A DNA stretch of 64,000 nt from Pavona decussata (lineage: Eukaryota): contig CDRNST010000104.1 in the NCBI GenBank assembly GCA_977016875.1, positions 3,410,001 to 3,474,000 of the forward strand, in the 5' to 3' direction. Position 1 is the stretch's first letter, and each line of letters opens with the position of its first letter. The notes under the pieces are model-generated. The model was given only the letters and a program-made list of their open reading frames with translations, did no database searches and had not been told where the DNA came from. Positions 1,664 through 49,774 of this stretch are shown here, piece after piece. The position numbers and the translations under genes were made by a program.

Positions 1664-3403
1664 TTAACTGTTATTTATTGAGTGGTTTCTTACCTCTAGA
1701 GCGCATCCGCAGGGGTAACCACATCCTCCGTATCCCAAGCCGCATCCCCCGTATCCTCCGCATCCTCCATATCCTCCACATCCCCAGCCTCCGAGAAAGG
1801 GATACCCGTAGCCATAGGCTGATAATCCGTATCCTCCCAATCCGCTGTATCCGAGTCCTCCACAGCCAGGTAATCCCAGGAACGCAGGCCCTCCACAGCC
1901 GCATCTCTTTTCAGCCTGGTTGGCGTTGTCTGAGGATGGTGGTTTACAGCCACAGTCACCTTTGTCTTTCTTTTTGTTCTTTGCTTCGGTATTTTCATCT
2001 GTTTCTATTTCGGCTTTGTTTTCTGCTGGTGTTTCTTCATCTGTTTCTCTTTTTGGTTTCGTCTCGGGTTGCCTGGCTTTACCTTTTTCAGAAATCTTGG
2101 ATTTGTAGAATCCGCAACCACACCCACAACCTGGACCCCATCCCCCGAAACCTCCATAACCCCAGCCATTACCAGGGAAAGCACCCCATCCCCATCCACC
2201 TTGGCCATATCCTCCCCATCCTAACCGACCACATCCTAATCCTGCACATCCTAAACCTCCACACCCTAATCCTCCGCATCCACCACACCCACCTAGTAAA
2301 CCACCACAGCCTCCAAGCAAGCCATATCCACAGCCTCCGAAGCCACCATAACCGCACCCTCCAAAACATTTCTTGTCGGCCTTCCCGGGCGCGTCGCGCT
2401 TGCTTTTCTCTCCTTTAGCAATTTTGGACTTATAAAAACATGAACCGAAAGGATAATGACCGAGGTAAGGGCTGAAGCTACCAAAGGCGGGAACACCGAA
2501 GCCAAGCCCTGGATGTCCGTAATTAGCCCAACCGGGATATCCGAATCCAGCGGGAACAGCAAACGGGGCATATCCACCATAACCGTAAAACCTCTTTTCT
2601 ACATTCCCCCTTCGGTTGGGATTTTTCTTATCGGTTTTTGGAACACCAGAGCGGAACAGGGCGCCACCATAATATCCTGGATAGGGATACAATCCATAGC
2701 CAGGAAAGGCGCCGAGACCATAGGCGTACGGAGCTGCATTATAACCACCCCAAGGGACAGCAAAACCACCAAAATACCCCCCGAGACCATACCCCCAGGG
2801 GTGCTCAACTCCAAATTTCTTAGATGAACCTCGACTTCTTGGACCTTTTGGTACATTAGACTTGTACCAATAGCCAGGCCAGCCTAGACCGGCTCCGTGA
2901 CCATATCCCGCTCCAAGTCCATGTGCAGGCCAAAAGCCAGGCGCGGCACTGGGATAAAAACCTCCAAACCCAAGTCCGTGGAATGCACCCCAACCAGGAT
3001 AACCCCAACCGCCAAACACACCTTGACCAGCATTGAACCATCTCTTAGAACCTTTTTGTTTGCTCTCTTTTTCTTTTTCTGTCGCTCCATCTGACAGTTC
3101 GTTTGATTTATCATCGTTGGTTTGTTCAACAGAGCTTGTATCGTTCTCGCTTTCTTCAACCTGTTGTTCTTTTTCGTCTTCTTTGGTCTCGGATTCGTTT
3201 TGGTTATCTTCTGCCGGCTTGTCTTCATCCTTCTCCTGTTCTTGATCGGAAGATTCAGGCGGTGAGTCTTCTTCGGGTTCGTCTCGTTTTAAGCGCTCTT
3301 TTCCTTCATTATTCTGGGATAGTGGCTTACTGTGTACCACGAGAAGACTTCCTAAGACTAGAAATACTAAAAAAAGGGAACAATTAAGTCGCAACGCAGC
3401 CAT
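1664..3403 (-). CDS. Secreted Gly/Tyr/Trp- and Gly/Cys-rich modular polyprotein precursor (cluster gene 1, ~579 aa)
   Basis: First in-frame ATG is at 3403 (the ORF track starts at a TTG). Signal peptide MAALRLNCSLFLVFLVLGSLLVVHS, then an acidic propeptide and five Gly-rich modules each opened by KR/KK; four end in [KR]S-x-[IV]. A possible splice donor (GAG|GTAAGA at 1693) makes the last 10 codons uncertain. Confidence 0.88.
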   Translation of the reverse strand: MAALRLNCSLFLVFLVLGSLLVVHSKPLSQNNEGKERLKRDEPEEDSPPESSDQEQEKDEDKPAEDNQNESETKEDEKEQQVEESENDTSSVEQTNDDKSNELSDGATEKEKESKQKGSKRWFNAGQGVFGGWGYPGWGAFHGLGFGGFYPSAAPGFWPAHGLGAGYGHGAGLGWPGYWYKSNVPKGPRSRGSSKKFGVEHPWGYGLGGYFGGFAVPWGGYNAAPYAYGLGAFPGYGLYPYPGYYGGALFRSGVPKTDKKNPNRRGNVEKRFYGYGGYAPFAVPAGFGYPGWANYGHPGLGFGVPAFGSFSPYLGHYPFGSCFYKSKIAKGEKSKRDAPGKADKKCFGGCGYGGFGGCGYGLLGGCGGLLGGCGGCGGLGCGGLGCAGLGCGRLGWGGYGQGGWGWGAFPGNGWGYGGFGGWGPGCGCGCGFYKSKISEKGKARQPETKPKRETDEETPAENKAEIETDENTEAKNKKKDKGDCGCKPPSSDNANQAEKRCGCGGPAFLGLPGCGGLGYSGLGGYGLSAYGYGYPFLGGWGCGGYGGCGGYGGCGLGYGGCGYPCGCALEVRNHSINNS

Positions 3404-4309
3404 AGTCTTCCGCGAGGAACGAAAGACCAAACTACGCCTTTAGTGAGACCACAATGTCTTTGCAAATGCAAAAGCCAACCTTACGTAAGTTATTAAATAT
3501 TCTTTTGTAATATAGAAAATAACGTGGCAAATAAAACATTAAAAAGACAAAACATTTTGCGTGTAGAATATTGTCTTCAGAATTCCAGGGCAAGCAATAA
3601 TTTAATTAGGTGAAAATTTATCAATATATTTTGTACGTTGCAAAGATGCTAGAATAAAGTTTGCAGTGGTGTGGATAGGGAGTATTTGATATTACTATTT
3701 CTTACTCCCAAGAAAAGTGATTTATCTTATTGCAAACCAACATTAATAAGTTATTTATGTCACCTGTTTAGAAGTCACGGGAGGGCAATTTTGCTTTGTT
3801 TGAGTAGTTATAGTTGTTTTGGCGAAGTTAAGTGACTACAGGTGTCCTACCATATTTGGCAAGACCATAAAGTGTTCAGCTACACGGAGCGACGGTTAAT
3901 TTGAAAGAAAAACGCGATTATCGCTGCCCACATTTAAAGAAAAATCATTACCTGGTTTGTTCAGTTTCTCCCCCAAACGAGGTGGCAAGTACCATGCTTT
4001 GAGCAAGCGTGATTGGTTGGGTTTAGGTTTACAATTATTTCAGTTTGTATTCCAGTTTTAACCCAAGGTACTTTTAAGACAAAAGTTAAAATAAAAGAAC
4101 AAACTATCGAGAATATTTTACAAACTGTGTTCTAAGTCAACATCATAACATTCATAAACAACTATATCTTAACGTGAAATTTATTTCTTGTGAACGCTTT
4201 ATAAAGAAGGCTTCAACATTTTTTTCTGGGCTTTAAACATTAAGAAATCCTGTTGTTATTTACTGGACTGTACCTCGAACGTGATTTAAAAATCTTCAAA
4301 GGTGGAAAC

Positions 4310-4875
4310 GAAACCACCTTGGTCAATTAGGTTTTCGCTGAGCTGATTAAAATGTCAACGACTCTTTTTAGTTGGTGCGACACTCTTGAGAGAATTAAGT
4401 GTTAGAGCAATTTGTTTCACATGGACACTTTGTTAGTCAACAATACGACCCGCAAACTACGAGCAGTTTATGACTGGTGGTGTTTGTGGCAAGTAATTGG
4501 GAAAGTTTTCGACTATAAAAAGAAAAATGTTTTAAAAAGGCAAACCAATTTACGTCGGTCAATCATGTGTTTAATGAGCTGATCAAATTGACAAACACTC
4601 TTCTTTGTTGGTGTAACAATACTGAGGGCTTTATGTACTTGAGCAAGTGTTTGTGTCAAGTAATTGGGAAAGTTTTCGACTACAAAAAGAAAAATGTTGT
4701 AAAACGGCAAACCAATTGATGTCGGTCAATAATGTGTTTATTGAACTGATCAAATTGTCAGCCACTCTTCTTTGTTGGTTAAACACTACTGAGGGCTTTA
4801 TGTATTTGGGCAATTTGTTCAACAATGGCTACCTGTTAGACAGCGACACGACCCGTAAACCACGATTAGTTTGCT
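4310..4875. repeat. Degenerate tandem duplication, ~167-bp unit, 2 clear copies plus 1 partial
   Basis: caagtaattgggaaagttttcgacta...tactgagggctttatgta occurs at ~4490-4640 and ~4657-4805. gcaatttgtt...acgacccg occurs at ~4407 and ~4810. Confidence 0.8.
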
Positions 4876-8330: not shown

Positions 8331-11300
8331 ATGTTTGGCCGGTCGCCGCCAAATATTCTGGCGACTTCAGTAGTTTGTTTCTTACTCTTTCTTCAATTTC
8401 AGTGGTCTCCAACGCAAGCGAAGCCTTACTCAAAACAAGAGTTTTTAAGTACATATACAGCAGGTAACCTTGGAGGTGTCCGTGAAGAAGATTGGCCGGA
8501 ATTTGTAAACTATAATAATGGACAAAATATAGAAAGAAGTAAGAGAAGTCCAACTGAAGTGGAAGATGAAACACTGGACAGTTTGGTAGAGAAAACTTTA
8601 AGTGTAAGAGCTCGAAAGAGACAAGGTATTGAAACGCCGATACAACCTTTGAATTCAGACTCTCCTTTAGATCTTCCACACTTTAGCACTGAAGAACATG
8701 TTCGCTCAAAAGTTAACCAACCTGATAGTGAATCGGTTGGTGTAACGGTGGAAGAAGAAAAGAAAGCAGATGACGACATCTCTAGTACGAAGGATTCGAA
8801 AGGAGGTGATAATAACGTCAAGCCGGCAACGGGAAATGAATCAAACGAACTGCATCAAGACGAAAATGTTTCTTCGAGTAATGAAAATTTGAACAATAAC
8901 AAACAGAGAGGAACAGAAAACAAAGAGAATTTAGCAGCACAGGATAAATCTGATTCCAGCAAAGTCAGTCTAAACACTGATTCAAGTACTGACAACAAAA
9001 ACAGTAAAGATACTGGGGAAAGCAAAGCAGACTTGAGCAGGTCCGTTGATGAAAATGCACAAGTTCGTACGGTCCAAGGTACCAGTCAGATAAATAAAAT
9101 TGGCAATATTCCTAATGACAAGAGCGGTTCAAAATCTACACCACTGGACAACGATCAGTCTAGTTCAGTTACCGCTAGTACCAAAACAAATCAACAGGAA
9201 ATCCAAACTACAAATACAAATAATGCCAACAAACAGCAGGTAGACACCGACGTAAGTAAACCCACCGCAGCGAAACCCGAAACATCGGGTTTAGTTTCGA
9301 GTAATCAAAAACCGGCAGCTCCTTCAGAACAACGTCCACCAACTAACTCCCAGTTATCCGAAGAAAGCAAACCGATAAACACAGTACCTCAAATAAAAAA
9401 TGAACCAGAGGAACCGGTTCGAGATGCATTGGGGAATAGTGGATCAGAAATTGTGACAACTCATTCTCCCCGAGAGCCTGAACCTGAACTTGATTCATAC
9501 TCAGAAAGAAGCGCGGAAGCGAAACCTTCTAATGGACCTGAGGTTGGACATTTTCAAGTAGATGACAAATCTGCCGATCTTGAAATAAACGCTAACTCTG
9601 CCGGGGTAAAAGTTAAAGCTAAACCCGCCTCGTTACAGGTGGTTTCACGCCCTGGTTCTCACGCCGCATCGGGGGCACAAGAGCGATCTTTGTTCGGCCA
9701 TTACCACTACCCGCCTTATCATGTTCATCACCACTGGTATCCTGGCTTGCGTAGGTCATACGGGCATTTCCACCGACGCCATTTCTTCAATCCTTACCCG
9801 CCTTTTCCTGAAAGGCGTAGTTTCGAACGCTTCTACGACGAAGCACCTTTCTACCGTCGCCGCTTGCACTACTGGTACCCTCACAGACATCGACACCATT
9901 TCCCGGATTCCTATTTGTACGAAAGATCCCAACTAGAGGAGCCGGAAGAGCCTTTAAGATATCGTCGGCGAAGACGCCATAAACGGCGTTTTAGGCATAT
10001 GAACGGTCCGTATCGACGCCAGTTTTATAACAACATTCCGATAACGAATGGCATGGAATCAACTCCGATGGGCGTGCCACCGGAAGAAGGAACAATGCCT
10101 CAGTTACCAATTGGCCCACTTCAACCATTTGCACAGCGGCAGAATATTATAACGCCAATGCCACCTCCGATAAACGTTGCTGGAAATCCACCGCCTGGCT
10201 TACTTGGAGGAATGAACGCGGAGAACTTTCCAATGAACGAAATGAGCAATTTTAATGGGATAAATCAAGTAAATGGCGCATTTAATGGGATGGGTAATAT
10301 GGGCACAACGGGATTCAATTCTCCAGAACAAATTGGCGCCATTGAAGGTTTACCAGTTGGAATGAACGGTGGTTTGGAAGGAATGCAAGCAGCTGAACAG
10401 ACACCCGGTATAACCAGAGAACTACCAAACAGGAAAACTTTAGCTGAGGAACCAAGAAAGGCATTCAAGAAGACTGCGATCGTTTCTGGGAAGAAGGACA
10501 ACCACACAACAACTAAAGAACACTCACACGATCAAAATACAGCACTTAAGAACAAACACTCAGAAGAAGGTAAAAAGATGCAGACAACTGGCAGCACAAA
10601 GAAAGCAAAGATAAACCTAAAAAGTTGGGAAAAAACTCTCAAACGTTATCATCGACTCAATAAGTTTACGTCAAAATCACACGAAAAACATCAATTTCGT
10701 AGGAGTACCAAATCTTCTTCTTTAGACTCGGAAACAAAGAACACTGAAGGAAAAGTTCTACAAAAACACCGCATCTCGCATCTTCACTCACAGCGTGCAA
10801 AAGACACAAAAGGGAAGCGAAAGAACGAGATTATAATGCACCGTCCACCAATCATATATCACCCTCCGCCTGAAATCTATCACCGCCCTGACATTGTGGT
10901 TCACCGTGCACCGATTATGCTGCATCGGCCGCCTATAATTTACCATCAGCCTCCCGTTGTTGTTCACCGACCAGCAATCATCTACCATCAACCACCCATA
11001 GTCTTCCATCAACCTCCTCCAATGGTCCATCAGCCAATCCTGCGCTCTCACGACACATGGGTGACAAAGCCTGTGGTGTATCACACAGCATCCACAGTTT
11101 CTCACGATAAGACATACTTTGGAGTACCGTCTCACGTGTACACTGGCTCTTATGGTGAAGGATGCCACGGAGGACATTGTTCTTACAGAAAAGGAAGTGT
11201 GCCACATAGAAATAATTCCCAAGCTACCCTTCATAAGATAAAAACAAAACGCGACAGTTTGAGTGACTATATGGCTTATTTTACGTCCTTGTGGAAGGCT

Positions 11301-14300
11301 AATGGCATGACCAAAAGAAACGTTCATGATGACTACGATTTTATCACGTCAAGGGATGGTGCAAAACAAAAATTAATTTACACAAGTGTGAATTCTGGTG
11401 GGATAAGTAAAAGAGACAGCGCTACAGATTACAACAGATACATTCACAGCATATGGAACCATAAAGTCAAACGAGAAGCTGGTGATTTAAAAAACGGAAC
11501 AGAGAAGAAAAAGAAGAAAGACGTCGTTGTCAACCGCCCTCCTATAATTTATCATCCTCCACCTGAAATTTACCACAGGCCAGACATAGTGGTACATCGC
11601 CCTCCTCTTGTGATTCACAGGCCACCCATTATATACCATCAACCACCAGTAATAGTTCATCGACCAGCCGTGGTGTATCATCAACCACCGATTGTATTCC
11701 ACCAACCTCCCCCTGCAGTTAGCCAGCCTTTGCTGTATTCTCACGACTCTTTCACTGTTCATCCTACGTTCTTTGCTACACATCATGGTTCTGTTGTGCG
11801 AGACTTCGGGCACTATGTAGGGGTTCCAAATGTCATCACTAATTACGGAAACCCACTTTTTGGGAGAGGACCGCCCATTGGCAAGAGATCAAAGATAGAA
11901 ACGCCAAATTCAGTTAACGAAACTCTATCGAAAAGCTCAAATTCAACGGGGACTACGTCCAAGAAAGCCACAATTCAAGACAACAAGAAAAAAGAAAAGA
12001 ATGACACTAGTGAAAAAGCAAAGAAAAAGAACACTGTTTTGGTTCATAGGCCTCCAATAATTTATCACCCACCCCCTGAAATTTATCATCGGCCTGTGAT
12101 TGTGGTACATAGACCACCCATCATGATTCATCGGGCACCAATATATTATCATCAGCCGCCGGTGGTTGTTCATCGTCCTGCTATAGTGTATCACCAGCCG
12201 CCGCTGATATTTCATCAACCACCTCCAATGGTGCATCAGCCAATACTAAGGTCCCACGATACGTGGATATCTCACCATGTGGTGGTTCCTTACTCCTCAA
12301 GTGTTATGCATCACCACACCTACGTTGGCGTGCCTGACGCATTTACCGTTCATCACTTCGCAGGAGGACACAGCTTTTATAAGTCAGACATTTTAAGGCA
12401 TAACGACCGAGATAATGAACGTGCATCTGAAAGAAATGAAATAACTGGTAAGAAAACGTCGACGGAAAAACAGAAAGATTTACCCAAGAAGCACAAAATT
12501 ACTTCACATGATAAAACCAAACACACTTTGAATCTCAAAATTAAGAAGGCGGCTGCTCAAAAGGGCGGAAAGAAAAACGCAGTCATAGTGCGACGTCCTC
12601 CAGTTATTTACCACCCACCACCAGAAATCTACCACAGGCCAGAAATAGTAGTTCATCGCGCTCCTATTGTAATTCATCGAGCTCCAATAATTTACCATCA
12701 ACCTCCTGTGATTGTACATCGACCTGCTATTGTGTATCACCAGCCGGCGCTCATATTTCATCAGCCGCCACCTATTGTACACCAACCGTTTTACAGATCA
12801 CATGACACCTATGTCCATATGCCAGTTGCGAGACTATACTCATCTCGGATAAACCATTTAGGACACACGTACCACATTCCACACGCCTACTACCACGGTC
12901 ATGGTGGTGTTATTCACCATATGGCTTATGACAAATCTAAAGTACCTCAAAAGCAGCATATTAAAGACGAAAAAGGGGAGACAAGGACCACTGTTAAAAA
13001 GAGAAAGAAGTCAAAAACAGAGAAAACTAGCCATCATGCAGAAAGAAAGCATGCCACCTTAACAAAAAGCAAAGACAAAACAGAAACAGGAACAAAACTT
13101 CACAAGAATCATAAAATTCTTTACCATAAGGCAAAGGAGACTACAGAAAAAGCAAACAAAAAAAACTCTGTAGTTATACACCGACCACCAATCATTTACC
13201 ATCCACCCCCAGAGATTTATCATCGCCCAGACATCGTAGTGCACCGCGCTCCTATAGTTCTCTACCGTGCTCCGATTGTGTACCATCAGCCTCCAGTGGT
13301 GGTTCATCGTCCAGCCATTGTTTATCACCAGCCACCTATCGTTTTCCATCAGCCACCGCCTATGGTCCACCAGCCAGTTCTCCACTCACAAGATACTTGG
13401 GTGACCAAACCGGTAGCCATCCCATACGCATCTCATGTACATCACATAGCCACCTACAGGGGTGTTCCCCACGAAGAGATCTTTATGCATGGGATTGGCA
13501 CAGGAGCGTTCGGAAAATCCAGAGTTCCTGTTAGAGGGACCCGCAGAAACAAGATAGATAGTGTTGGCGATGAGAGAAAGAACCAAACAGACAACAAAGA
13601 AACAAAGGAAGCGAAAAATTTGAACGAGTCGAATGATAAAGGGAAGAATCGTACAACGAGAGCTGCATACAGTGAAAAGCAAGGTAAAGATACAATAGGA
13701 GCAGCAGAGAGAATAATACGAGCATTAACGGATTCACTTACAGATAAACGATTGGAATTTATGGTGAAGAAGAATCCCATTGGAGTTGGTGCAAGAATCC
13801 AAAGAAGCCTTCAAAATATATTCCCTGTGTATGGAGACTCTTTATCACTAACTGCCTCAAACCCTCATAATTCAATCAAGATTCCAGGACAATCTGTCGG
13901 TGCGGTAACGAGAATTCAACGATCCAACGGTGCCTTTTGGAGTCCGGTGGGTGCTGGTGCTAGGATACGGAGGGCCGTAGCAGAGCCATGGAACACTCTT
14001 GAAGGTGAGAATCCATATGAAATGAATAAACGTAGTAGTGAGGAAAGTGAAAACCCCTCTACACCTGACGAAAATGCAGACAAAAACACTAATAGCACCA
14101 AAAAGACAATACTTATAATTCGCAGGCCACCGATACTTTATCATCCACCAAGCCACATGATCCATCGACCATCCATAGTTGTTCACAGGCCGGACATTAT
14201 AGTCCACCGTCACCCCATCGTCTTTCACAGACCACCAATACTAGTTCATCGTCCCCCAATCATAATCCATCGCCAACCAGTACTTATTCACAGGCCGCCA

Positions 14301-17300
14301 GTAATAGTTCATCGACCGCCATTGGTGTTTCACCGGCCACCTATAATTATTCACCGTCGTCCTTATATTATTCATCATCATCCTATTCTGTTCCATCGAC
14401 CACCAATTATTATACACAGGGGACCGCAAATGATAGTGCATCACTCCCACCTAATTCATCATTATCCTATGCACATGATACACATGCACTGTCCTGGTTG
14501 TGGTTTTGGAAAATCCACCGTTGCACGATTGCAAGGTAAAAGAACTGATCAAGACGGTAAGAAAACATCAAATTCAGACAGACAACATAAAGACGCTACT
14601 GTCAAGGACTCCCAACGGAAAGATTCTAACCTGCCAAAACGCTCTGTTGCAGACAAGAAGTTAAAGAAAAGTTCCCGAGAAGAGGACCATAACAAAAAGA
14701 AGAAAGACGGACACAAAAAGAAGAAAGACGTAGTAGTCAATAGACCCCCGATTATTTACCATCCGCCACCAGAGGTATACCACAGACCAGACATTGTTGT
14801 TCATAGGGCTCCCATTCTTATTCACAGGCCACCTATTGTATACCATCAACCTCCTGTTGTAGTTCACAGACCAGCGGTTGTTTATCACCAACCACCCATT
14901 GTGTTCCACCAACCTGCACCGGCAGTGAATCAACCTCTGCTATTCTCACACGATAGTTTTGTTGTACATCCTATGGCTTTTGCATCCCACATGGGATCTG
15001 TTGTAAACGACGCTGGTCATTATGTTGGTTTACCGCACGGTGGAGTAACTAATTACCCAGGTTCTATATCCCATGGACCAACAGGACACATCATTCCTTA
15101 TTTAAATCCACCCAACTGGTCAAGAAGAGCTCAAGTTTCTAAACCGCTGGACGAAAAGCATACAAAAATCAACCATGGGAAGAATAACAAAGACCGGAAA
15201 CGTTCCTCTGGGACGACTGATGGCACTCACAGAAGAAGCGCAGGAAACAGTAGGAAACTTGTAATACAGGAAAGCAAGGAGACCAAAGGTGAGAGAAAGA
15301 ATAAAGTTATCGTTGCACGACCACCTCTGATTTATCACCCACCACCTGAAATTTATGATCGCCCAGACATTATTGTACACAGACCAGACATTGTGATCCA
15401 TCAACCCTCAGTTGTGTACCACCAGCCATCTGTAGTAGTCCACAGGGCACCGGTGGTTTATCATCAGCCTCCTGTTGTATTTCACCAACCAGCTCCAATG
15501 GTTAGCCAACCAGTGTACCACGCCCATGACACGTACATGGCACACCCCGTATATCATCCGCAAGAGAGCCACATTTCGCACTCTGCAACATATGTAGGAG
15601 CACCTCATTACTACCCAGGATACAACAGTTACGGATGGGGCTTACAAGGGAATATACCCACTGCACATATACAGCCAACTCCACAGATCCCTCAATATGG
15701 TTATACAACTGGTCCTACTCATCCTGGTTTCAGTGGATACACACCATATTCAGCCTCCCTTGGAAATGCCTTCGGAAGATCAAAGGTAGAAAATAAAAAG
15801 AAAGATAAATTTAAAGACAAAGAGACAAAATTGAAAAATGCTACCAAAAAGGGTCGTACGAGCAGGTCCGTGGAGTTAAGCAAACGTCACGTGCATCACC
15901 ATCATCATCACCACCATCGTCACCATCATCATGGCATTCATTATCGCGGAAGGAAACGCTTTTATCCTCTCCATCCAATGGCATCCTTTGCCCATCCAGG
16001 ACATCGCAAACATGTCGTCATTATACACCAACCTCCTTTGATATATCATCCACCGCCGCAAGTTTATACTCGGCCAGACATACTCATGCGTTTGCCTCCG
16101 CTTGTTTACCACAGGCCAGCGATAATGTTTCAACAGCCACCGACAGTAGTCCATCACCCCCAAATAGTTTATCACCAACCTCCCGTAGTCTTTCACAACC
16201 CTCCTTCAATAGTACACACACCAGTTATTCACACGCGCGAGATGTTGTCACCTCACCTTCAGCATGTAATGATTCCAACATCATCGTACATGCACTCTGT
16301 TGGAAACTTTTTTGAGCCTGGTGTCTCAGGTACGGCATACGGAAAGGCTCACATAGAGCGAACCGACGCAAGCAAAGACTCTTTGAAGAGCGAAGCTGAT
16401 ATGGAGACGAAAAGCAAGAACAAGAATGAAAAATCACACGAAAAGCGAGACGTTTCTAACGAACCTGAAAAAGAAATGAAAGATACGAAAATATCAAAGA
16501 AACAGAACGTTGATCTTGTAGTCCACCAGCCACCAGTGATGTATCATCCGCCACCGGATATCATTGACAAGCCAGCTGTTGTAATGCACCAACTTCCGAT
16601 AGTCGTGCACCGTCCGCCCATACTCATACACAGACCTCCTGTTGTGGTCCACAGCCCCCCAGTGATAATACACAGAGCTCCAATTGTACTTCATGACACA
16701 GCACCCGTGTATCATGTACCACATGGCAATTTCTTTCATCCAATGCGCTATGCTTTTGGAAAATCCACAGTAGAAGGCGAGAATCAGCAGCGAAACAAGG
16801 ACAAGCACAGCAAGGAGAAACATGATGAAAAGACCAGCCAGACGAAAGGCGCCAAACATTCAAATACTGAAAAAGCAAAAAGGAAAAACACCGTTCTTGT
16901 TAATAGGCCTGCGATGATATACCACCCTCCACCGGAAATCTATCATCGACCAAACATTATAGTACACCGCCCAGACATAGTCATACACCGACCATCAATT
17001 GTGTATCACCAGCCTTCCGTCCTTATTCACAAACCTCCCATAATCTATCGTCAGGCACCAGTTGTTTTCCACCAGCCTCCACCAATGGTGCATGAACCAA
17101 TTTTGCATGCACACGACTCGTACCTTGCATACCCTGTTGCACTGCCATACACATCACACATTCATCATGCAGCAACATACGTTGGGGCTCCACACTTTTT
17201 TGATCAGCCACATTTTGGTGGATTTGGTGGATATGTGGGGCATGCTTTTGGAAAATCGGAAGTTGAGGAGACCAAGAAAACACACCGCAGTGATGAAAAG

Positions 17301-20300
17301 GAAAGTAAGAACAAAAAACATACCAACACTGAGGTTAGAAAAAATTTAAGGTCAACGCGTGATGTGGACTCTGAAAAAACAACTAAAGAAAATAAAAAGT
17401 CAACCTCCACGGTCAGTTCTAAAGGGCACAAAAAGAACAAAGTTGTTATAAACAGACCGCCATTAATTTACCACCCGCCACCAGAGATATATGACAGACC
17501 AGATGTAATTGTTCATCGGCCGGATATCGTCATTCATCGTCCTTCTATTGTTTATCACCAATCATCAGTAGTTGTCCACAGACCGCCAATCGTATATCAA
17601 GCACCTTCTGTGGTCTTCCATCAACCGCCACCATTGGTGAATCAGCCCATAATGCACGCTCATGAAACTTACGTTGCTCATCCAGTACCAGTGCCCTACA
17701 CATCCCATATCCAGCACACATCAACCTATGTTGGTAGCCCACACCACTATCCTGGTGGATGGCACTATGGTTGGAGCCAACCTCAGCCGTATGGATTTAC
17801 CTGGAGTCAGCATCAGCCATTTGGTTTGGCATTCGGAAAGTCAAATGTGCCCGCAGCAAAGCTAAAGTCTTCAGGGAACCATAAGCCCGCAAATAAACAT
17901 AAAGTAAAACGAGCGGAGAAAGATCAAGCCAAAAAAAATGACAAAAACATAAGCCCAAAGTCTGAAGGGACCGGTAAGAAGAAAAACCAAGTACTTATAC
18001 AACGACCACCTTTGATATACCACCCACCGCCAGACGTGTACCACAAACCTGATATAATTGTGCACAGACCTGACATTGTTATCCACCGGCCTTCCGTGGT
18101 TTATCACCAGCCATCTGTTGTGGTTCACAGACCACCGGTGGTTTATCATCAGCCGCCAGTTGTTTTTCATCAGCCATCTCCAATGGTTAGTCAGCCAGTT
18201 CTACATGCACATGACACTTATGTCGCCCATCCATATTTTACGCCCTACTCATCCGATGTATATCACTGTGGAAGCTACGTTGGTGCTCCGCACTGTTATA
18301 ATGGCGGATGGGGGGAACACGGATATGGCTTTGCCCATGCCTTTGGAAAATCAAAAATACAAGTGGCTAACAAGAAACAAAAGCACCAAAAATACAAAAG
18401 CAAAGATCTAAAGGGCCACCGCAGAACCCTTGAGAAGGAAATCAAGGAGGCGGTGGATGAGATTAAATTAAAGAAGGAGGCCAAAAAGGGGATAAGGGCG
18501 AAAAAGAAGAACCTCGTCATAATGCGTCGGCCTCCTCTAGTCTATCACCCACCACCGGAGATTTATCACAAACCGGATGTCATTGTGCATAGACCCGATA
18601 TTGTCATCCACAGGCCTTCTGTAGTTTTCCACCAGCCTTCGGTTGTAGTTCATAGACCACCAGTAATTTATCAACAACCTCCAGTCATATTCCATCAGCC
18701 AGCACCCATGGTTCACCAGCCTATCCTTCATTCACATGACACGTATTTCGCGCACCCCCACTTTGTCCCGTTTGCGTCGCACTTACATCACGCAGGCAGC
18801 TACGTGGGTGCCCCACATTTTTATCCAGGAGGATGGGGCTTAGGAGGGCACACTGATGACTTTCACCACGCGTTTGGAAAATCAAAAGTCGAAAAATCGT
18901 CAAAACAGCATGTGAAGAGTGACCACGAGAATAAGGACGGAAATGATGACGATGGGGAGAAACGTTCTCCACCAGAGGCAACAGACTCTTCTGAGGAAAA
19001 TAAGCATAAAGGCAAAATTAAGGAAGCCACAAAAGGACACAAGAAAAACTTAGTAATCATGCGTCGGCCACCACTTATTTACCACCCGCCTCCAGAAATA
19101 TATCACAAACCAGATATAATTCTACACAGACCGGATATCGTTATTCACAGACCGTCAGTTGTTTTCCATCAACCATCCGTGGTGGTTCATAGACCACCAG
19201 TAATTTACCATCAGCCGCCAGTTGTTTTTCATCAGCCATCATCAATGGTACACCAGCCTATCTTCCATTCACACGAGACGTATGTTGCTCACCCTCATTT
19301 TGTGCCATATTTGTCCCACTTAACGCACGCTGGGTCTTATATAGGGGCACCACACTTTTTCCCAGGACACTGGGGACCAACACATGGGTTCGGACATTTA
19401 GCGGCACATGCATTTGGAAAATCCAAAGTAGAAAAAGCTGCAAAAAAAGTAAATACAAAAGCTGTGACTCCAAGAGCAAAGTCAGAGGAAGCTGTGCATT
19501 TTAAAACCAAACGAGAGGCAAAACATGAAAACTTGCATCGTGACTTGTCTGGTGTGAATCAAAAGGCAAAGCTAAAACAACAGTATTGGAAAGCCACGGG
19601 AGAAAAAGCAGAAAGAAAGGCTGTCCATTTACATCCCGAAAAGGAGACTAAGAAGGGTCACCATAAAGCACACAGAAAAAACTTAGTCCTGATACAACGT
19701 CCAGCTTTGATTTATCATCCGCCACCAGAAATCTATGACAGACCAGCTATCATTGTTCACCGACCCGATGTCGTCATTCATCAACCTTCCGTGGTTTACC
19801 ACCAATCTTCGGTGGTTGTCCATCGTCCACCAATTATATATCGCCCACCACCAGTAGTATTCCATCAACCAGCACCAATGGTACATCAGCCTATGTACAC
19901 TTCCCACGACATATATCATAGTCATCCGCACTTTGTCCCATATGCCTCTCATATCAAGCACACACAAACCTACGTAGGAGCACCGCATTACTACCCTGGA
20001 GGATGGAGGTATGGCTACGGCTTTTCTGAAGCCTCTATACCTCAACACGCTGGATTAAATGGGTGGAATGCATTTAACAGTCCATGGTATCAACCATCAC
20101 TTTACAGAGCGAATTACCTTACACCAACTGGTGTAGCATCGCCCAGCGGTATCCGCAGAAGATACCAGTCAGCATTTGCCAAGTCTGATGTTCAAAAGCA
20201 CGATGCGAAAACCGAAGACTTGAAGGACAATCACAAGAAAAAAGACGAAGGTAGCCAAAAATCGCATCATGTTCAAGAAAAAACAGGAAAACGAAATCGC

Positions 20301-27128: not shown

Positions 27129-27259
27129 NNNNNNNNNNNNNNNNNNNNNNNNNNNNNNNNNNNNNNNNNNNNNNNNNNNNNNNNNNNNNNNNNNNNNNNN
27201 NNNNNNNNNNNNNNNNNNNNNNNNNNNNNNNNNNNNNNNNNNNNNNNNNNNNNNNNNNN
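27129..27259. other. Assembly gap (N run)
   Basis: Run of N. Confidence 1.
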
Positions 27260-39159: not shown

Positions 39160-41130
39160 ATGGTGGCCTTTCGGGGATTGTGGCTGTGTCTTTTAGGGAT
39201 TGTGTTGTTTAGTTTTTCCGCTGGCGTTCATTCAAAGGGAACAAAAACCAAACGAAGCCCAAGAAAAAATACCGTTCGTTATACCGTTCATGAAAAACCG
39301 CCAGAGCTGGTTGTGAATGCAGATCCCGAGGGAGTGAAAGTTCAAGCCAAACCTTCAAAGCTTCAAGTTATAGCTTACCCTCATTTGCAAGGTTTTAGCC
39401 CTTACGAACACACAGCAGTACTAGGTCCACACAGCCCGCCCGTGAATATTGGCCCAAACGCACCTCCAGTTCACATTGGACCTCACGTGCCAGCTCTTCA
39501 TCTTAGCCCTCGAGTTCCAAGCCTTCATTACGGCACTAACGCGCCTCTTCTACACGTAAGGCCTCATCTTCCATTTGTTCACATGACTCCTCCCGTACAC
39601 GCCGTAAACGCGCTCACTGGTCCTCCAGTGCACGTGTTGTCGCCATCGACAGTGTATCATCAAACGCCGATTGTTTTCCATCAGCCACACTTTAATTATC
39701 CCTCGCACTTTAATTATCCCACCCCAGCGTTTGGTGGATATGGTCCAATGGGAGGTTATGGCCCAGGATTCGGTGGTTTTGGCGGAGCTCCTGGTTTTTT
39801 CGGACGTTCTACGATACCTGAAAATGATGAAGAAGACGAGGAGGACAGTGATAAAGACCCTGAAAGTGATTCGCATAAGAAAAAAGGCAAATCAAAACGC
39901 GAGGTTGTGTCACAAAAAGTTAAACGTCAGTGGTTTGGTTGGCATCCATTTCCCCACACTGTGAACGTAGGACCACACACCCCACCCATCCACGTTGGGC
40001 CACATTATCCCCCTGTCCACATTGGCCCTCACGTTCCAGCAGTCCATATCGGGCCTCATGTCCCAGTGATTAACGTTCCATCCCATGTCCCCGCAATCCA
40101 TGTGCGCCCTCATGTTCCTGCTGTGCATCTTGGACCTCCCGTTCCTATCATAAATGCAGGAAACCACTTCCCAGCTGTGCACGTTACGTCACCACCTACC
40201 ATCTACCACCGTCCTCCTATCGTCATCCACCAACCTCATATTGTTCATCCTTATGGAGGATGGAAGAAGAGATCAAAAATTGCCAAAGCTGTGGACTCAA
40301 AAGAAGAGAGTCCGGAGAAGACTGAAGAAGATGAGGCCGAGCAGAGCAGCGGAGAAGAAGAGACAAAAGAGCAAGCCAAGGATATTGAAGACAAACCTAC
40401 AGAGCAAGCAGAGCAGACTCCCGAAGAATCGAGTGGAGAATCACAGGAGGATAGCAGAGAAACACCCCAAGTAGAGGAAGAGAAGAAAGAAAGCACAAGA
40501 TCTGTCGAAGAAGCTGACGTTCGACCAAAGCGTCAGATGTTTTCCAATGCTAATTCTGGACCAAATGGTGATTCAGTAATATTCGTTCACCCGAGCGAGC
40601 ATGGTGCAGGAAATCCCGCGGGACTAGGTGAGTTGGCTGGTGGTCATGGTAATCCGTTGGAAGGCGGCAATCCAGCTGAACCTTTTGGTGACCTGTCTTC
40701 GAAGGCATTCGGAGAAGGATTCAATCCCAGCTCCTTCCCAGAAGGAGGACCTGGAGGAGAAATGGGTACCGGTGGAGATAGCCTTGCTGGACTCGCAGGA
40801 GCAAGTCTCGGGGGAGCGGCAGGTCTTGGAAGTAATGAAGGTCCACCCATGGGAGCTAACAGCTTTTCTGAGGCTGGAGGATTAGGTGGCCTTGGCGGAC
40901 AGGCTGCCCCTGGAGGCGAACTTGGAGGACTTGGAGGATTGGGTGGTGCAATGGCCTCGCCAATGGCAGCAGGTCTTGGTGGAGAGGAAGCTAGATCTAC
41001 TGTCCCACGTTCGTTTATTCCTAGAAAGCTTAGAGAGATAAGCAGAGGCTACCTTACAAGAAACCCTCTTGACGATGGGCGTAATGCAGCCATAGTCAAG
41101 AAAACGCAGATTCCACGACCAGGACAGTAG
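39160..41130 (+). CDS. Secreted His/Pro/Val- and Gly-rich modular polyprotein precursor (cluster gene 3, ~656 aa)
   Basis: ATG at 39160 (the ORF track starts at an upstream TTG). Signal peptide MVAFRGLWLCLLGIVLFSFSAGVHS; three modules separated by acidic spacers and KR sites, ending in RSTIP, RSKIA and RSTVP; AATAAA at 41203. Confidence 0.92.
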   Translation: MVAFRGLWLCLLGIVLFSFSAGVHSKGTKTKRSPRKNTVRYTVHEKPPELVVNADPEGVKVQAKPSKLQVIAYPHLQGFSPYEHTAVLGPHSPPVNIGPNAPPVHIGPHVPALHLSPRVPSLHYGTNAPLLHVRPHLPFVHMTPPVHAVNALTGPPVHVLSPSTVYHQTPIVFHQPHFNYPSHFNYPTPAFGGYGPMGGYGPGFGGFGGAPGFFGRSTIPENDEEDEEDSDKDPESDSHKKKGKSKREVVSQKVKRQWFGWHPFPHTVNVGPHTPPIHVGPHYPPVHIGPHVPAVHIGPHVPVINVPSHVPAIHVRPHVPAVHLGPPVPIINAGNHFPAVHVTSPPTIYHRPPIVIHQPHIVHPYGGWKKRSKIAKAVDSKEESPEKTEEDEAEQSSGEEETKEQAKDIEDKPTEQAEQTPEESSGESQEDSRETPQVEEEKKESTRSVEEADVRPKRQMFSNANSGPNGDSVIFVHPSEHGAGNPAGLGELAGGHGNPLEGGNPAEPFGDLSSKAFGEGFNPSSFPEGGPGGEMGTGGDSLAGLAGASLGGAAGLGSNEGPPMGANSFSEAGGLGGLGGQAAPGGELGGLGGLGGAMASPMAAGLGGEEARSTVPRSFIPRKLREISRGYLTRNPLDDGRNAAIVKKTQIPRPGQ

Positions 41131-45040: not shown

Positions 45041-45266
45041 NNNNNNNNNNNNNNNNNNNNNNNNNNNNNNNNNNNNNNNNNNNNNNNNNNNNNNNNNNNN
45101 NNNNNNNNNNNNNNNNNNNNNNNNNNNNNNNNNNNNNNNNNNNNNNNNNNNNNNNNNNNNNNNNNNNNNNNNNNNNNNNNNNNNNNNNNNNNNNNNNNNN
45201 NNNNNNNNNNNNNNNNNNNNNNNNNNNNNNNNNNNNNNNNNNNNNNNNNNNNNNNNNNNNNNNNNN
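45041..45266. other. Assembly gap (N run)
   Basis: Run of N. Confidence 1.
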
Positions 45267-46139
45267 TGAAATTCTCAAGTGGCGCTCTTTATAAGTATAA
45301 CCTGAGGTGTCGAACAGAACTTTCTGTTTGTGCTATTTACTGTTATGTACCGCCCATGTTAGAACTTTTTAATGCATGTATGACTCCTTAAGTAGAACCA
45401 TTCAATAGCCAGACTTCCTTAAACAAAAACAAACTGTAAGTATTGCAATACTGGCCAAGTAGAAATGTAACCTCTTTCTTTTAGTTCAAATTGTAGATAA
45501 TGTGATAGATTAACCAGCATGGTTGATAGCATGAAAAAAACGAGGTGCCAGCCGGTTGGTTGCCTCTCACAAAGCCAAGTGAAAAGGAAACATTTTCAAT
45601 AGTGATTTATTAACATTGCCTGCAGCTTCAAACTAATGTAATAAAAACTACTTCAACTCCATAATTTCCCATTTAAGCAAGGTTCACAGAAAACGGAGTA
45701 AACACTCAAAAGCCGATGGTACTTTTATGATTTAACACTGGGTGTGATAATTTTCTATTTCGATTCTCGATAGTGTTTCCTATAACTGAACGTAAGGTTT
45801 ACTGTTTTCCTATGAATGTCGGCTTGTCTTAACTTCTCCATACATACCTTTTTCATGGGCCCGTACTTTTCGGTCAACCCTTTGAGAGGGCTCATAACCG
45901 CCCCTAACCTTAGTAATATGGCATTTTTAAAAATGATGATAGAAATCAATCGCAAAGAATTAGGCCACTTGCTGGCAAAGTTATTTATTATTTACCATAA
46001 ACATGATATCACCAGAAATTATCCAATGAAAATAACAAAAACGGTAGCGATTTTACTTTGCTTCTATCGCAGTAGATATGGAAATTTTTCGTCTTTAAAT
46101 CGAAAAAGTGGACCTGAATTTTTTTCCACAAGCACAAGC

Positions 46140-47205
46140 ATGACATGGTTTAATTTGGGCGATGGAGTTCGGGTGATAATATGTCTTGTTTGTTTGTGCC
46201 ATTGTTTTGGAAGTGTTAATCCAAGAGCATTACCCCAAGATGGTGGCACAGTGACTCAGACTGGTGAACCGTCACATTTTCAAGTTGATGACAAGGCCGC
46301 TGAGATTGAAGTAAACGCCAATCCTGCTGGGGTGAAAGTTAACGCTAAACCAGCGTCTCTTCAAGTTGTAGCAAAGCCTGGTACACCAGCCGTTCCCATA
46401 TTCCATCCATCAATTCATTTGGCTCAGCACTATGCGCCACCACCGGTCATCCATCACGAACCAGCCATGTTTTATCACGGTTGCTTTCATTTTCCCTATT
46501 GTCACAACTGGTTCTACAATGGAATCAAACGAGAAAAGTTTCCAAGACCACAAAACGTTGAAATTAATATCAGGACACACAAATCGGACATCCCGCGAGG
46601 AAATAAGCACAAAATGGGGATTAAGTCCCGAAAACGTCAATTTATATCCGCTGCTCCACAACTTGTACTACCAACATCGGTTGGTGCTTTGGGAGGGCTA
46701 AGCGCTTATGGCGGCTATGGATATGGGGCGTTACCTCAGTATGCTCCATTAAGTTCGGTTTCAAGAGCTTATGGCTTTCGACAAAGTCCTCAAGCGCGAT
46801 TATTTGCATCACCAGCGCAGCTACTCCCTCAGCAAGGTCTCCAAGAGACTGGTCTTACAAGAGGCCTTGTTCCTACAGTGGCAAACGACCAAGACAATCC
46901 TGAAGTTTGGCGAGGTTATTCAAAGCTTTACAGTGAGCTGAATACCCTTACTTCTATGTACAACGCCTTCTTAAGACAAAGAAGCCTGAATTCTCTACAG
47001 GGTTTGGGTTATGGTAGTGGCTTAGGTCTTGGTGGTGCGACAAGTTTCAATGCGGGAAGGAGTGGTTTAAGTTATGTACCCGCAACCCTAGGAACTTCTC
47101 AGTATAGCGATGCAATGATGGGTTACGGAAAAGCTTACATCCCTTCCCCATTGTCCCAGCTTTATGGGTCACAGAGCTCTCTTGGTCAGTCCAACGGACT
47201 CCTTG
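46140..47205 (+). CDS. Secreted modular polyprotein precursor (cluster gene 4), exon 1
   Basis: ATG at 46140 gives the signal-like MTWFNLGDGVRVIICLVCLCHCFG. Contains HFQVDDKAAEIEVNANPAGVKVNAKPASLQVV (near-identical to gene 2) and an RKR-Q module. Phase-1 donor CTTG|GTATGT at 47206. Confidence 0.85.
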
Positions 47206-48677
47206 GTATGTTTACACAAAACTCAAATTTTTACGTTGTTTGTTTGTTTATTTTGTTTGTTTGCTTGTTGTACTGTTACACTGTCCAAATGGCATCTGGT
47301 GTATTGGAGGATAACTCCCGAGGCTAAGAGTGGCTTGTGAAGAGGCTCTTCAGCTACAGCCCTAGGTGCAGTGCTTTCGGAATATAGTATCGGTATTATA
47401 GTGGCAATTTTATACAGTTCCAAGCGAAAGAGACACAAGAACAGTCAATCAAACAACTTGATTTTAATAGTTCACTCCTAAAATTAAAGTTTAGTAGAGT
47501 TTTCCTTTACGTAATTAGTTTACCAACCACCCCCCCCCCCCCCCCAGCATTGTTATGCTTTAAAACGCCAATCGTGTTTAACTCTATCTAGACCGTGCTT
47601 TTTTTGTCTTTTCGGGTAGTTGGGGGAGGGAGGGGTGGGGGCGGGTTTCCCTCTATATCTTCGCAAGTATAAAAGCTATGACAATGAGTCTTACAGCATA
47701 GATAGTTTGTCCAAAGATATTTCCTCTGAGGTCCGCAACGAGAAAAAACTGAAAAAAAAACTGCCGGTCAAAGGACACTAACCGAGTATATAAAAAATTT
47801 TCGTAGATCTAGTTAGGTTTAACGTGTTCAAATAAAGCTTCCTGTTGAGTATCTTATATTAGATCCAGAATATGAAAAATTGCACTAAGGAACAATTTTT
47901 TAAGGGTAGCAGAGACAATCGTTCAGTTCGTGGAATTATCACGTGATTTAATGGCAGGCTGGCGTTATTGCGCGAGGTGTAAGCAAGTACAACTTTATGG
48001 GTTTCTTGAGAACTGACTGAATCTAGCTTTTTCAACATGTTTTTCCTTTCATCGCTACAATCGGGGGAGGAATATTCGGGTAATCAGAGGGGGTACATCG
48101 TCAGATACCAACTGTATCATCTAATGTTTTTTTGGGGGGGAGGGGAGGGGCGTTGAAAGAAAATGTCTGTCTTATCAGATGGAACTTTGATTTGCCCTTT
48201 TTTTGTTTGTTTGCCATCATCTAACGCAACGATAGTAACCTAAAATTCATTATCACCCATATAAAACATGAACCTGATTATATACAAAGAGATTTATTTA
48301 TTTGTCAATTCAAAAGGAATTTGGCAGTTTGTCTGCCAATAAATAATAATGGGAGGAGAAGCAATCGATTTTGTCGTGTGGAGACTGTCTGCAGTAGTCT
48401 GGTATTAAGAGTAAATCAGTTGCACCGGCAATGTTGGCAGTTCAAAACTTTTCTTTGATGAGTAGACTTCATACCTAAATATTGGGTTCCTTTGCTATAG
48501 TTTGTGACTCATTCGTGCTGTAAAAGTTCCATTGCATAGTAGTCTACTGTGAGAACTTTGTTCAGTATAGACCTTCGTTTCGCAGCTTAATACTAGAAAT
48601 AATTTGCTTTGATGATATGGTTTTTTGTGATGTGTTGGTAAAGCCATCATTTTTCAACTTGTGTTTGTTTTCTGCAG

Positions 48678-49774
48678 GAGCTTCACTAGTCAACCAGCAA
48701 GCTATGTCTCCATATCTGGTATTCTCACCTGTTTTGCAGCGATCACCATTAGTTAGTAGATCCAAGGTTCCTACAGTGTCGGCAAAGAAAGCGAAAAAAC
48801 CGCAAAAGGACAAAGGAAAGGTTGACGTCAAGCGCCAAACCTTGGTTGAGCCAATTTTGTCTGAAGAACCAAACAGCGTGGATGATTTATTACAAGACGG
48901 CATGTCTCAAGACTACAAGCGTCAATTTGTACTGACTCCAGCTCTGGAAACGCTGCAGCAAGTGCAGCCATTGCAATCTACGTTCTCACAGGAATCCTTG
49001 CAGCCGCAGCTACGTCAGTTGCAGCTGCAGCAGCTGTTACAAGAGCAGCAACAAGCACCACAGTCGTTAGGGCTGCAGACGGTGGGAATGCAGTCTGTAG
49101 CTGGGGTCCAACCAGTCGGCATGCAGCAGCTAGGCATGTCAGGCTCTCAGCAACTAAGAAATCTTCTTCCATTACAATCCTCGAGCTCGCCACTCCGTTA
49201 CCTGACATCTTCGCTGGTGTCACCTACGGAAGGCCTTAGTTCTGGCTTGATTGCTAGACCACAATCGAGGTTCTCACCCAGTATGATATCGCCAATGGCA
49301 TCACCTTTGATGTCTTCATCTCTCGATTCTCCAAGTTTAATGTCTCCATTACTCTCCAACGGGTTTTCTCATCCTCGTAATACTGATGTCTTCCAAGACA
49401 GATCACTATTTCGTCATCCACTGAGAGTTGGATACTCGGGCTATCCAAGGCGACTCCTTAGAGGACCTCAATACCGTCGACGATTACACAACTTCCGAGA
49501 AGAGGAGGGCTTAGATGGAATACAACCTGAAATTCTAGGAAAGGAGGAAATCACAACGCCGGGATCTTACACCACTGAACGCGTACCCGACTCTGAAGGA
49601 CAGACTCTTATAAACTCGCCCGTGGGATTTGGACCGATCACAGTTGAGGCTAAAACTGCAGAGGGGGCAAGGATGGCGCAAGCCAATGCAGAAGATAAAA
49701 GACACAATATTAACAAACCAGTTCAAAAAAATCACAGAAGGAAGTTAAAAGACCAAGACCATTTGTTGAACTAA
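48678..49774 (+). CDS. Cluster gene 4, exon 2 (spliced product ~720 aa)
   Basis: Acceptor gtttgttttctgcag ends at 48677 and is phase-compatible with exon 1 (G|GA = Gly). Completes a module ending RSKVP, followed by KR-Q modules rich in Gln and Ser. Confidence 0.85.

Follow-up and report, generated by a model that had tools for sequence, protein, structure and literature searches.

What would four adjoining genes make, if each encodes a secreted-type protein assembled from repeated low-complexity units that open and close on the same short basic motifs? The question is raised by a 64,000-nucleotide stretch of the Pavona decussata genome (GenBank assembly GCA_977016875.1, contig CDRNST010000104.1, positions 3,410,001 to 3,474,000, forward strand), which we call the window. 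The genes are g1, on the minus strand, and g2, g3 and g4, on the plus strand. An earlier note, made from the letters of the window, had read them as a system of co-secreted building blocks for one structure. Our analysis leads to a related reading, which we hold with middling confidence: the locus appears to be a gene cluster, conserved and confined to Cnidaria, for structural polyprotein precursors, which are probably cut at the motifs that bound their units. The parts of this reading differ in strength. It is likely that the genes belong to a family of secreted structural precursors; actual release of the modules is evenly poised; and the cnidocyst is a tentative destination, somewhat less likely than not. 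Positions below are window coordinates unless they carry a prefix beginning with L; L007 is the stretch to the left of the window, and L006, L013 and L014 are loci of other species. Own-genome searches cover the 602-Mb genome of the window species. The main features are listed here (ORF, open reading frame; aa, amino acids).

1694-3403, minus strand: g1 exon 1, 570 aa, from the ORF translation
L007:8112-9725 (window-relative -275 to -1888, outside the window), minus strand: g1 exon 2, 537 aa, an in-frame continuation
8331-26507, plus strand: g2, a single uninterrupted 18.2-kb ORF of 6058 aa
g2 aa 1-30, plus strand: signal peptide of g2
9537-9731, plus strand: shared N-terminal domain of g2 (FQVDDK..E.E.NA..GVKV.AKP..LQVV), from alignment and own-genome search
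10815-21215, plus strand: His-Pro heptad zone of g2, 18 modules of ~90-165 aa each
21216-26507, plus strand: C-terminal zone of g2, the last 1760 aa, with ~14 Gln/Pro-type modules
39160-41130, plus strand: g3, 656 aa, with a signal peptide
39277-39441, plus strand: shared domain of g3
39409-39717 and 39928-40272, plus strand: the two His-Pro nonamer modules of g3
46140-47205, plus strand: g4 exon 1, with a signal peptide, the shared domain within 46209-46460, and RNA contigs
48678-49774, plus strand: g4 exon 2, joined in frame to exon 1

The modular layout can be followed along g2. Each of its 18 His-Pro modules consists of a [KR]-K-N-type start, about nine heptads (hydrophobic triplet-His-(R/Q)-Pro-Pro) and a His/aromatic tail. 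All 18 start with [KR]-K-(N/K/T/H), with three hydrophobic residues within two or three residues, and the tails mostly close with AFGK-S-x-V; the end F-G-[KR]-S-x-[IV] is present in 12/18. In the own genome, the heptad module was found at the g2 locus only. The modules of the C-terminal zone mostly have KR-Gln-hydrophobic starts and variable Gln/Pro/Leu-rich bodies, and they end in a beta-strand-like tag, P-x-V-x-[IV]-N-V-[EQ]-x-A-K-S-x-[IV]-P, which is kept in the L013 orthologue. We also note two spacers of g2. The one at 11190-11516 (aa 954-1062) contains ~20-aa KR-flanked peptides with a repeated D-S-x-x-D-Y...S-[LI]-W pattern; the first of these peptides is kept in the L006 orthologue, and they could be separate small products. 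The other, at 13518-14105 (aa 1730-1925), is unusually long and carries three or four copies of G-A-R-I-[QR]-R-[SA], partly kept in L006.

The remaining genes follow the same plan with other cargo. In g3, the nonamer modules are followed by an acidic spacer, a Gly/Leu/Ala-rich module and a terminal R-S-T-V-P-R-S-F-I-P. An hhalign comparison matches the module tail of g3 with the heptads of g2 (probability 95.5%, E 1.4e-8), so the heptad and nonamer kinds of His-Pro cargo are related. Exon 1 of g4 has a His/aromatic stretch closing in HK-S-D-I-P and then a KRQ-initiated Gly/Ser/Leu/Gln-rich module; this module runs on in exon 2 to R-S-K-V-P and is followed by two KRQ-initiated Gln/Leu/Ser/Pro-rich modules and a conserved GFGPITVEAKTAEG tail, which is kept in the Actinostola gene model P0003 and in L013 and L014. 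The g4 intron (GT..AG, 47205/6-48676/7) is skipped by RNA contigs of two independent studies, and the exons join in frame. Since these contigs, which begin at ~45939-46057, cover only the exons, g4 is transcribed and spliced.

For g1, we infer a two-exon gene that runs off the left edge of the window. Its first exon closes at a GAG/GTAAGA donor (1694/1693), which the ORF reads through, and the second opens ~1.97 kb downstream of the donor after a polypyrimidine tract and an AG. Position 1664, at which the finding of the earlier note begins, is not the end of the gene, as the donor joins a second exon left of the window. In exon 1, a signal peptide and an acidic spacer precede three Gly/aromatic modules, one whole Gly/Cys module and the start of a fifth module. 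Exon 2 completes this split Gly/Cys module and adds three further KR-initiated Gly/Cys(/aromatic) modules; the module ends are G-K-S-K-I (the split module), F-R-S-K-L, C-K-S-N-V and A-R-T-G-V-P, and GGCGGCGG repeats are very dense. The g1 modules all span KR or KK to [aromatic]-[KR]-[ST]-x-[IVL]. The second exon is kept after the g1 orthologue in another species (L006 12159-14036).

A domain of ~35-40 aa occurs once near the N-terminus of g2, g3 and g4 each, as shown by alignment; the earlier note had described it at ~35 aa in the same three genes. When the g4 copy was searched against its own genome, it matched g2 (E 1.5e-14), g3 (1.1e-4) and an ORF on another contig, C150 (3.6e-6). A remnant of the domain, K-P-V-S-L-Q-V, lies at the equivalent place in the Hydra orthologue of g2. 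By eye, the V-K-V-N-A-K-P segment of the shared domain resembles the V-x-[IV]-N-V-E-x-A-K-S of the Gln/Pro end tag, and the two sequences may have a common origin.

Are the module boundaries more than a by-product of basic, low-complexity sequence? Motif counts in the five exons inside the window were compared with 500 composition-preserving shuffles. The end motif [KR]S.[IV] occurs 39 times (9.2 expected), its longer form [KR]S.[IV]P 17 times (0.96 expected) and KRQ followed by a hydrophobic residue 15 times (0.32 expected), 11 of them within g2 (0.29 expected). The enriched motifs coincide with module boundaries: the cargo usually opens after KR or KK and closes with [KR]-S-x-[IV](-P), and g3 and g4 obey the same rule. 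Hydrophobic, signal-peptide-like N-termini, with small residues before the likely cut, are found on g1-g4 and on their orthologues, as judged by eye. The central observation of the earlier note, four neighbouring genes with signal peptides and repeated cargo units that have common boundaries, is thus borne out, as are its five chemistries (Gly/aromatic, Gly/Cys, His-Pro heptad, His-Pro nonamer and Gln/Pro), all of which we found. Its estimate of ~45 modules becomes ~50 on our recount: 8 in g1 with exon 2, 18 His-Pro modules, ~14 KRQ Gln/Pro-type modules and a few N-terminal ones in g2, 3 in g3 and ~4 in g4. Its module start, given as KR, KK or RK, needs narrowing; it holds for the KRQ and [KR]-K-N-type starts, but plain dibasic pairs are unspecific in the His-Pro zone. 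Tandem Repeats Finder detected no DNA-level repeat inside the genes, so the modules are old and diverged in DNA rather than recent duplications. We also note that the end motif, basic-Ser-x-Ile/Val-Pro (e.g., 23848-23862), shares its form with SxIP, a cytoplasmic motif that binds EB1 at microtubule tips. As the cluster proteins carry signal peptides, we take this likeness to be a coincidence.

The modules and their boundaries have been kept over long distances. In the g2 orthologue of L006, the modules are collinear one by one with those of the window. In a codon alignment of the two genes over the first 2420 residues, the heptad cores have a ratio of nonsynonymous to synonymous substitution rates (dN/dS) of 0.029 and the modules as a whole one of 0.055, whereas the spacers reach 0.32 and the Ser/Thr/acid-rich N-terminal region 0.37, at a dS of ~0.9-1.2. 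The cargo is therefore under strong purifying selection (dN/dS 0.03-0.06), and the spacers evolve fast. Against the Nematostella g2 orthologue, identity is 0.69 in the cargo and 0.37 in the spacers, and 19/29 [KR]S.[IV] sites are retained; the Nematostella protein itself has 13 [KR]S.[IV]P motifs where 0.72 are expected. The grammar is in this way a property of the orthologues too. Module 2 of g3 shares 95% identity with Nematostella LOC5512467 and 100% with the relatives P0001/P0002, and the g1 orthologues P0009 and P0010 have 66-70% identity. A more distant g1 relative, P0012 (28% identity), carries other Gly/His/Trp-rich cargo in the same layout, with a KR-Gln start and a [WY]-[YK]-[KR]-S-x-V-P end.

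Gene order is retained as well. In L006, g1 and g2 have the head-to-head arrangement of the window, and next comes a Cys-rich gene with a counterpart left of the window. L013 has a g2-like gene, the C-terminal module of g3 and a two-exon g4, in that order, and L014 has a more divergent two-exon g4 followed by a leucine-rich repeat (LRR) ORF and an EF-hand ORF, an arrangement that the window matches with its gene at 53138-54598. In Actinostola, g3 and g4 are fused into one gene model, P0003. Nematostella LOC116618347 and LOC5512467, the g2 and g3 relatives, presumably lie on one 13.7 Mb contig. Taken together, the head-to-head g1 and g2, the order g2-g3-g4 and the LRR/EF-hand gene are retained in other species.

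How widely is the family distributed, and has it been described? Two g2 modules, searched exhaustively with HMMER through 1.84 billion representative sequences, gave 40 matches below 1e-30. The named relatives of g2 are Nematostella LOC116618347 (5088 aa) and Hydra vulgaris LOC100210570 (3822 aa, with about ten His-Pro modules), both called 'uncharacterized'; g2 orthologues are 5.0-5.8 thousand aa long in other anthozoans and 3.8 thousand aa in Hydra. The g3 relatives are Nematostella LOC5512467, an Actinostola protein and others without a name, and the relatives of g1 and g4 (37 for g4) are all without a protein name. The strong matches that carry a name are all cnidarian (Nematostella and Hydra, with Actinostola from the g3 search), and most strong matches are nameless. 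Weak matches, to bacterial metagenome-assembled genomes and others, were sampled and rejected as homologues, being translated simple repeats (e.g., HRPSAIG) or other low complexity. Judged on the named strong matches and the sampled weak ones, the family appears to be restricted to Cnidaria. The best named relatives, from Actinostola, Nematostella and Hydra, also bear out the cnidarian origin guessed in the earlier note and place the genome among the hexacorallian cnidarians. For the two spliced genes, these homology searches used single exons (g1 exon 1 and g4 exon 1).

No search placed any of the four genes in a characterized family, in agreement with the earlier note, which had called the system a candidate for an undescribed one. 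Pfam gave nothing credible over the exons, the ORFs to the left of the window and the C150 paralogue; matches to Chorion_3, PFF1_TM, Presenilin and Keratin-tail were dismissed as low-complexity noise. A profile search of the PDB found no relative of the His-Pro heptad, and a match of the nonamer profile to the nonapeptide-repeat tail of Spt5 was taken as a repeat artefact. The ESM Atlas returned nothing usable for the g3 module. No searchable paper mentions the LOC/XP identifiers or any of six peptide strings. Both are also missing from the supplements of the Nematostella matrisome and miR-2022 papers, an absence that is uninformative either way. The family itself is undescribed, and its kind, a secreted polyprotein precursor of low-complexity building blocks, is known.

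How might such precursors work? KR and KK sites are substrates of Kex2/furin-type convertases, and cnidocyst proteins and toxins carry propeptides ending in KR. Periodic sequences with a high content of His, Cys and aromatic residues form tough or hard materials outside the cell, and taxon-restricted low-complexity proteins rich in Gly/His and in Cys, such as spinalin and minicollagens, are typical cnidocyst building blocks. In the mechanism we propose, the signal peptide would direct each precursor into the secretory pathway, with its cargo modules set in fast-evolving, highly charged spacers. A Kex2/furin-type convertase would cut after the KR or KK at the module start, often exposing an N-terminal Gln that can cyclize. 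A second activity would cut or mark [KR]-S-x-[IV]-(P) at the module end; the simplest guess is that the chain is cut at a single basic residue, between K/R and S. The freed modules, rich in His, Cys and aromatic residues and with a strand-turn period of 7 or 9 residues, would assemble into an insoluble, beta-rich material, possibly with metal, disulfide or aromatic cross-links. The likeliest destination would be the post-Golgi vesicle in which cnidocysts (nematocysts or spirocysts) form. AlphaFold2 predicts short strands every 7 residues in a g2 module and every 9 residues in a g3 module, and this periodicity in the absence of a confident monomer fold would fit a structure that depends on assembly. 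A homo-oligomer prediction for four copies of the g2 module scored 0.00 and speaks neither for nor against it. The fullest version of the proposal is doubtful: that a pan-cnidarian locus supplies the bulk blocks of a cnidocyst substructure (nematocyst tubule, spines or shaft, or spirocyst thread) as ~50 cleavable modules, with a dedicated protease reading [KR]-S-x-[IV]-P as a hitherto undescribed processing signal and the ultra-conserved His-Pro modules forming a new periodic beta material.

Several observations weigh against the view of a cleaved, cnidocyst-bound precursor set. The cleavage of the modules is predicted from their boundary motifs, and [KR]-S-x-[IV]-P fits no protease specificity that could be checked. 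The spacers of the g2 His-Pro zone, at 18-40% K+R and mostly strongly net positive, are so rich in basic residues that dibasic pairs there carry no information; what is specific in this zone is the [KR]-K-N-type start together with the K-S-x-V end. The grammar is weaker in Hydra, with 13 [KR]S.[IV] motifs for 4.7 expected and no KRQ. The structure predictions are of low confidence, with a predicted local distance difference test score (pLDDT) of 63 and a predicted template modelling score (pTM) of 0.23 for the g2 module, and a pLDDT of 42 for the g3 module. In g1 exon 1, g2, g3 and both exons of g4 we counted 0 minicollagen CX3CX3CX3CX3CC domains and 0 Gly-X-Y runs of at least 5; g1 exon 2 has no collagen run by eye and dense GGCGGCGG-type repeats instead. 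Finally, Nematostella has a 'spinalin-like', fibroin-like gene, v1g243188 (NV2.10343), which is nematocyte-specific and whose knockdown thins the shaft filaments and disorders the barbs (Karabulut et al. 2022, PMC9205923). Neither its translated primers nor its short hairpin RNA target are in the Nematostella g2 or g3 proteins, and no Nematostella orthologue of g1 was found.

Could the proteins then act uncut? They might be giant modular matrix or surface proteins, in which the basic motifs and K-rich spacers stay in the mature protein as binding sites for a polyanion (poly-gamma-glutamate or chondroitin, for instance) or as cross-link sites, for example by supplying Lys, and the His-Pro units are tandem domains like those of other large matrix proteins. 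The charge of the spacers suits polyanion binding, their dN/dS of 0.32 rather than 1 indicates some constraint, and the number and order of modules agree one to one between species, as would be expected of a single functional chain; the predicted nature of the cleavage counts on the same side. Against this, modules of five unrelated chemistries, spread over four genes, share one end motif, even where the spacers are acidic (g1, g3), and a common processing enzyme fits this better than a binding site does. The KR-Gln-hydrophobic starts (15 for 0.32 expected) are also the classic layout of convertase cleavage and pyroglutamate formation. We consider the uncut alternative somewhat improbable. A processed material could also be destined for a place other than the cnidocyst, such as gland or epithelial mucus, adhesive, cuticle, periderm, egg coat or mesoglea, and the missing Cys-rich domains of minicollagen type favour this. 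The window also has no miR-2022-like site at <=3 mismatches, a negative that is weak at best and close to uninformative. However, both Hydra and sea anemones have the family, the searches did not recover it beyond Cnidaria, and the cnidocyst is the structure common and exclusive to these animals; KR-terminated propeptides and Gly/His/Cys-rich low complexity are, as noted above, typical of cnidocyst contents. A processed material of another tissue is in our view improbable.

Cnidarian neuropeptide precursors also combine a signal peptide with numerous dibasic sites and a Gln behind KR, so the genes might encode precursors of bioactive peptides (neuropeptide, hormone or antimicrobial). The Gly-Lys/Arg ends of 12/18 His-Pro modules are a possible amidation signal, and the ~20-aa KR-flanked peptides of the g2 spacer at aa 954-1062 would suit this role. 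Yet the modules are 60-165 aa long, not 4-20 aa; at most module ends, namely those of g1 and the C-terminal zone of g2, the basic residue is not preceded by Gly; and the composition and strict strand-turn period suggest a material. Antimicrobial peptides, moreover, evolve fast, whereas the cargo has a dN/dS of 0.03-0.06 and g3 module 2 remains nearly identical to its Nematostella relative. Precursors of bioactive peptides are thus very improbable. For the co-secreted building blocks proposed in the earlier note, the secreted look, the modularity, the enriched and conserved grammar, the difference in dN/dS between cargo (0.03-0.06) and spacers (0.32) and the synteny all argue in favour, and as an interpretation it is partly supported.

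Several features surround or interrupt the cluster, and we list them here.

27129-27259: assembly gap (N run), intergenic, 622 nt past the g2 stop codon (26507)
45041-45266: assembly gap (N run) between g3 and g4, ~870 nt ahead of the g4 start and 3.9 kb past the g3 stop
L003:1417-2280 (G000:C150:644294-645157), on another contig of the window genome: fifth family member, found in the shared-domain search (E 3.6e-6)

No reading frame of the cluster spans either gap, so frame continuity across the gaps is irrelevant to the gene models. GC content is 33-46% across the window and peaks over the long ORFs. The earlier note had seen only repeats between the genes. We found no ORFs of at least 150 aa there, and interspersed repeats are present, but small multi-exon genes may lie there as well. 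Among these repeats, one of ~690 bp at 32066-32756 has inverted ends of ~115 nt, resembles a miniature inverted-repeat transposable element and has dozens of genome copies at 88-93% identity; a second family, of ~450 bp, lies at ~27552-28004. The 4.9-kb divergent intergenic region of g1 and g2 holds two tandem copies of a 167-bp unit (4480-4813, 89% match). Long antisense or off-frame ORFs within g1 and g2 (1639-2418, 10788-11327 and others) are by-products of low-complexity coding, not genes. Beyond g4, 53138-54598 is a single-exon gene of 486 aa with LRR (LRR_6) and a C-terminal EF-hand, and an ORF at 62604-63569 on the minus strand has a weak ZU5-domain match and is probably one exon of a larger death-domain-type gene.

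The extent of the cluster given by the earlier note, four genes, holds within the window, but g1 runs off it, related ORFs lie to its left and a fifth member lies on C150. The ORFs on the left (L008-L012, window-relative -54472 to -15696) combine a signal peptide and an acidic spacer with a body rich in Cys, Gly and Pro. Among them are a near-duplicate pair of Cys-rich ORFs with CECCKEKTPPGQCKWPC, a second near-duplicate pair of Pro/Phe/Ser-rich ORFs with an A-K-K-S-I-P end, and an 882-aa ORF with a long Gly/Ala run; none of the L008-L012 ORFs has a Pfam match. One of the left-hand Cys-rich genes is syntenic in L006 (20305-20766). With related ORFs up to 55 kb left of the window, the cluster exceeds four genes. 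The C150 paralogue has a signal peptide, one clear and one degenerate copy of the shared FQV.DK...V domain, a Ser-rich stretch and two motifs of the [KR]-K-S-x-[IV] type, F-R-K-S-A-I and L-R-K-S-V-V.

Why does the locus matter? The known make-up of the cnidocyst beyond minicollagens, NOWA, spinalin, cnidoin and nematogalectins is incomplete, and other cnidarian secreted materials are poorly known. The locus offers a concrete candidate set, including a protein of 5-6 thousand aa that extends from Hydra to sea anemones and has neither domain annotation nor literature. From its recurrent boundary motif, exact peptide termini can be predicted for proteomic work. Should the modules indeed be set free and assemble, protein materials would gain a new class of sequences in the His-Pro heptad and nonamer, and the boundary motif would be the sign of a processing step new to the secretory pathway of cnidarians. 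Because there are orthologues in Nematostella and Hydra, where expression atlases, knockdown and transgenics are routine, the hypothesis can be directly tested there and quickly settled.

How does the cluster compare with systems that are already known? Minicollagens and NOWA are cnidocyst wall proteins; they are cnidarian-restricted, secreted and Cys-rich, have a KR-terminated propeptide and are encoded by clustered genes. The cluster resembles them in being cnidarian-restricted, secreted and Cys-rich and in the clustering of its genes, and differs from minicollagens in that its exons are without the CX3CX3CX3CX3CC domain and the Gly-X-Y collagen run. Spinalin, from the nematocyst spines of Hydra, has a Gly/His-rich N-terminal part and a basic/acidic, Cys-containing C-terminal part. 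Milde et al. 2009 (PMC2687796) report it to be a short splice variant from a locus that is much longer. Like spinalin, the cluster is cnidarian-restricted, secreted and of Gly/His-rich low complexity, the g1 Gly/aromatic modules and especially P0012 coming closest in composition only; unlike spinalin, which is not described in this way, it encodes multi-module polyproteins. The parallels with spinalin, squid beak protein and Nvjp-1 are analogies of composition only. Much the same applies to Chorion_3 (PF05387), the family of the insect chorion, which is a hard coat and shares a Pro/Val/His-rich periodic strand-turn sequence with g2. The three thirds of g2 scored 25.8 bits (cut-off 22), 21.0 bits and none against this profile, over ~120/277 positions, and we rejected homology, as a partial match inside a low-complexity repeat is a compositional resemblance only.

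Closer parallels in layout come from other polyproteins. Nematode polyprotein allergens of the ABA-1 type and cnidarian neuropeptide precursors consist of tandem units freed at RxKR or KR by furin/Kex2-type convertases, and cnidarian peptides often begin with pyroglutamate formed from Gln after the cut. The cluster proteins are likewise secreted tandem units at dibasic sites, with Gln after KR. The units of these precursors are folded lipid-binding domains or amidated peptides of 4-20 aa, with one unit type per precursor, whereas the cluster has several chemistries per locus and a second, non-dibasic end motif. Profilaggrin, which is cut to monomers that build a barrier, is also a His-rich polyprotein of giant size; a single, very large exon encodes most of it, and short linkers connect its near-identical tandem units. 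It is, however, cytoplasmic, with an S100 head and without a signal peptide, and it is vertebrate-specific and fast-evolving, whereas the cluster proteins are secreted and their units old and strongly conserved. The diatom silaffin precursor Sil1p has a signal peptide, an acidic region and repeated basic units that are freed at an RXL-type motif for an extracellular material. Its Lys/Ser units, of ~20-30 aa, serve silica; the cluster modules, at 60-165 aa, have five chemistries, another end motif and unrelated sequence. What the two have in common is the plan, a secreted precursor of repeated units set off by a short conserved boundary motif.

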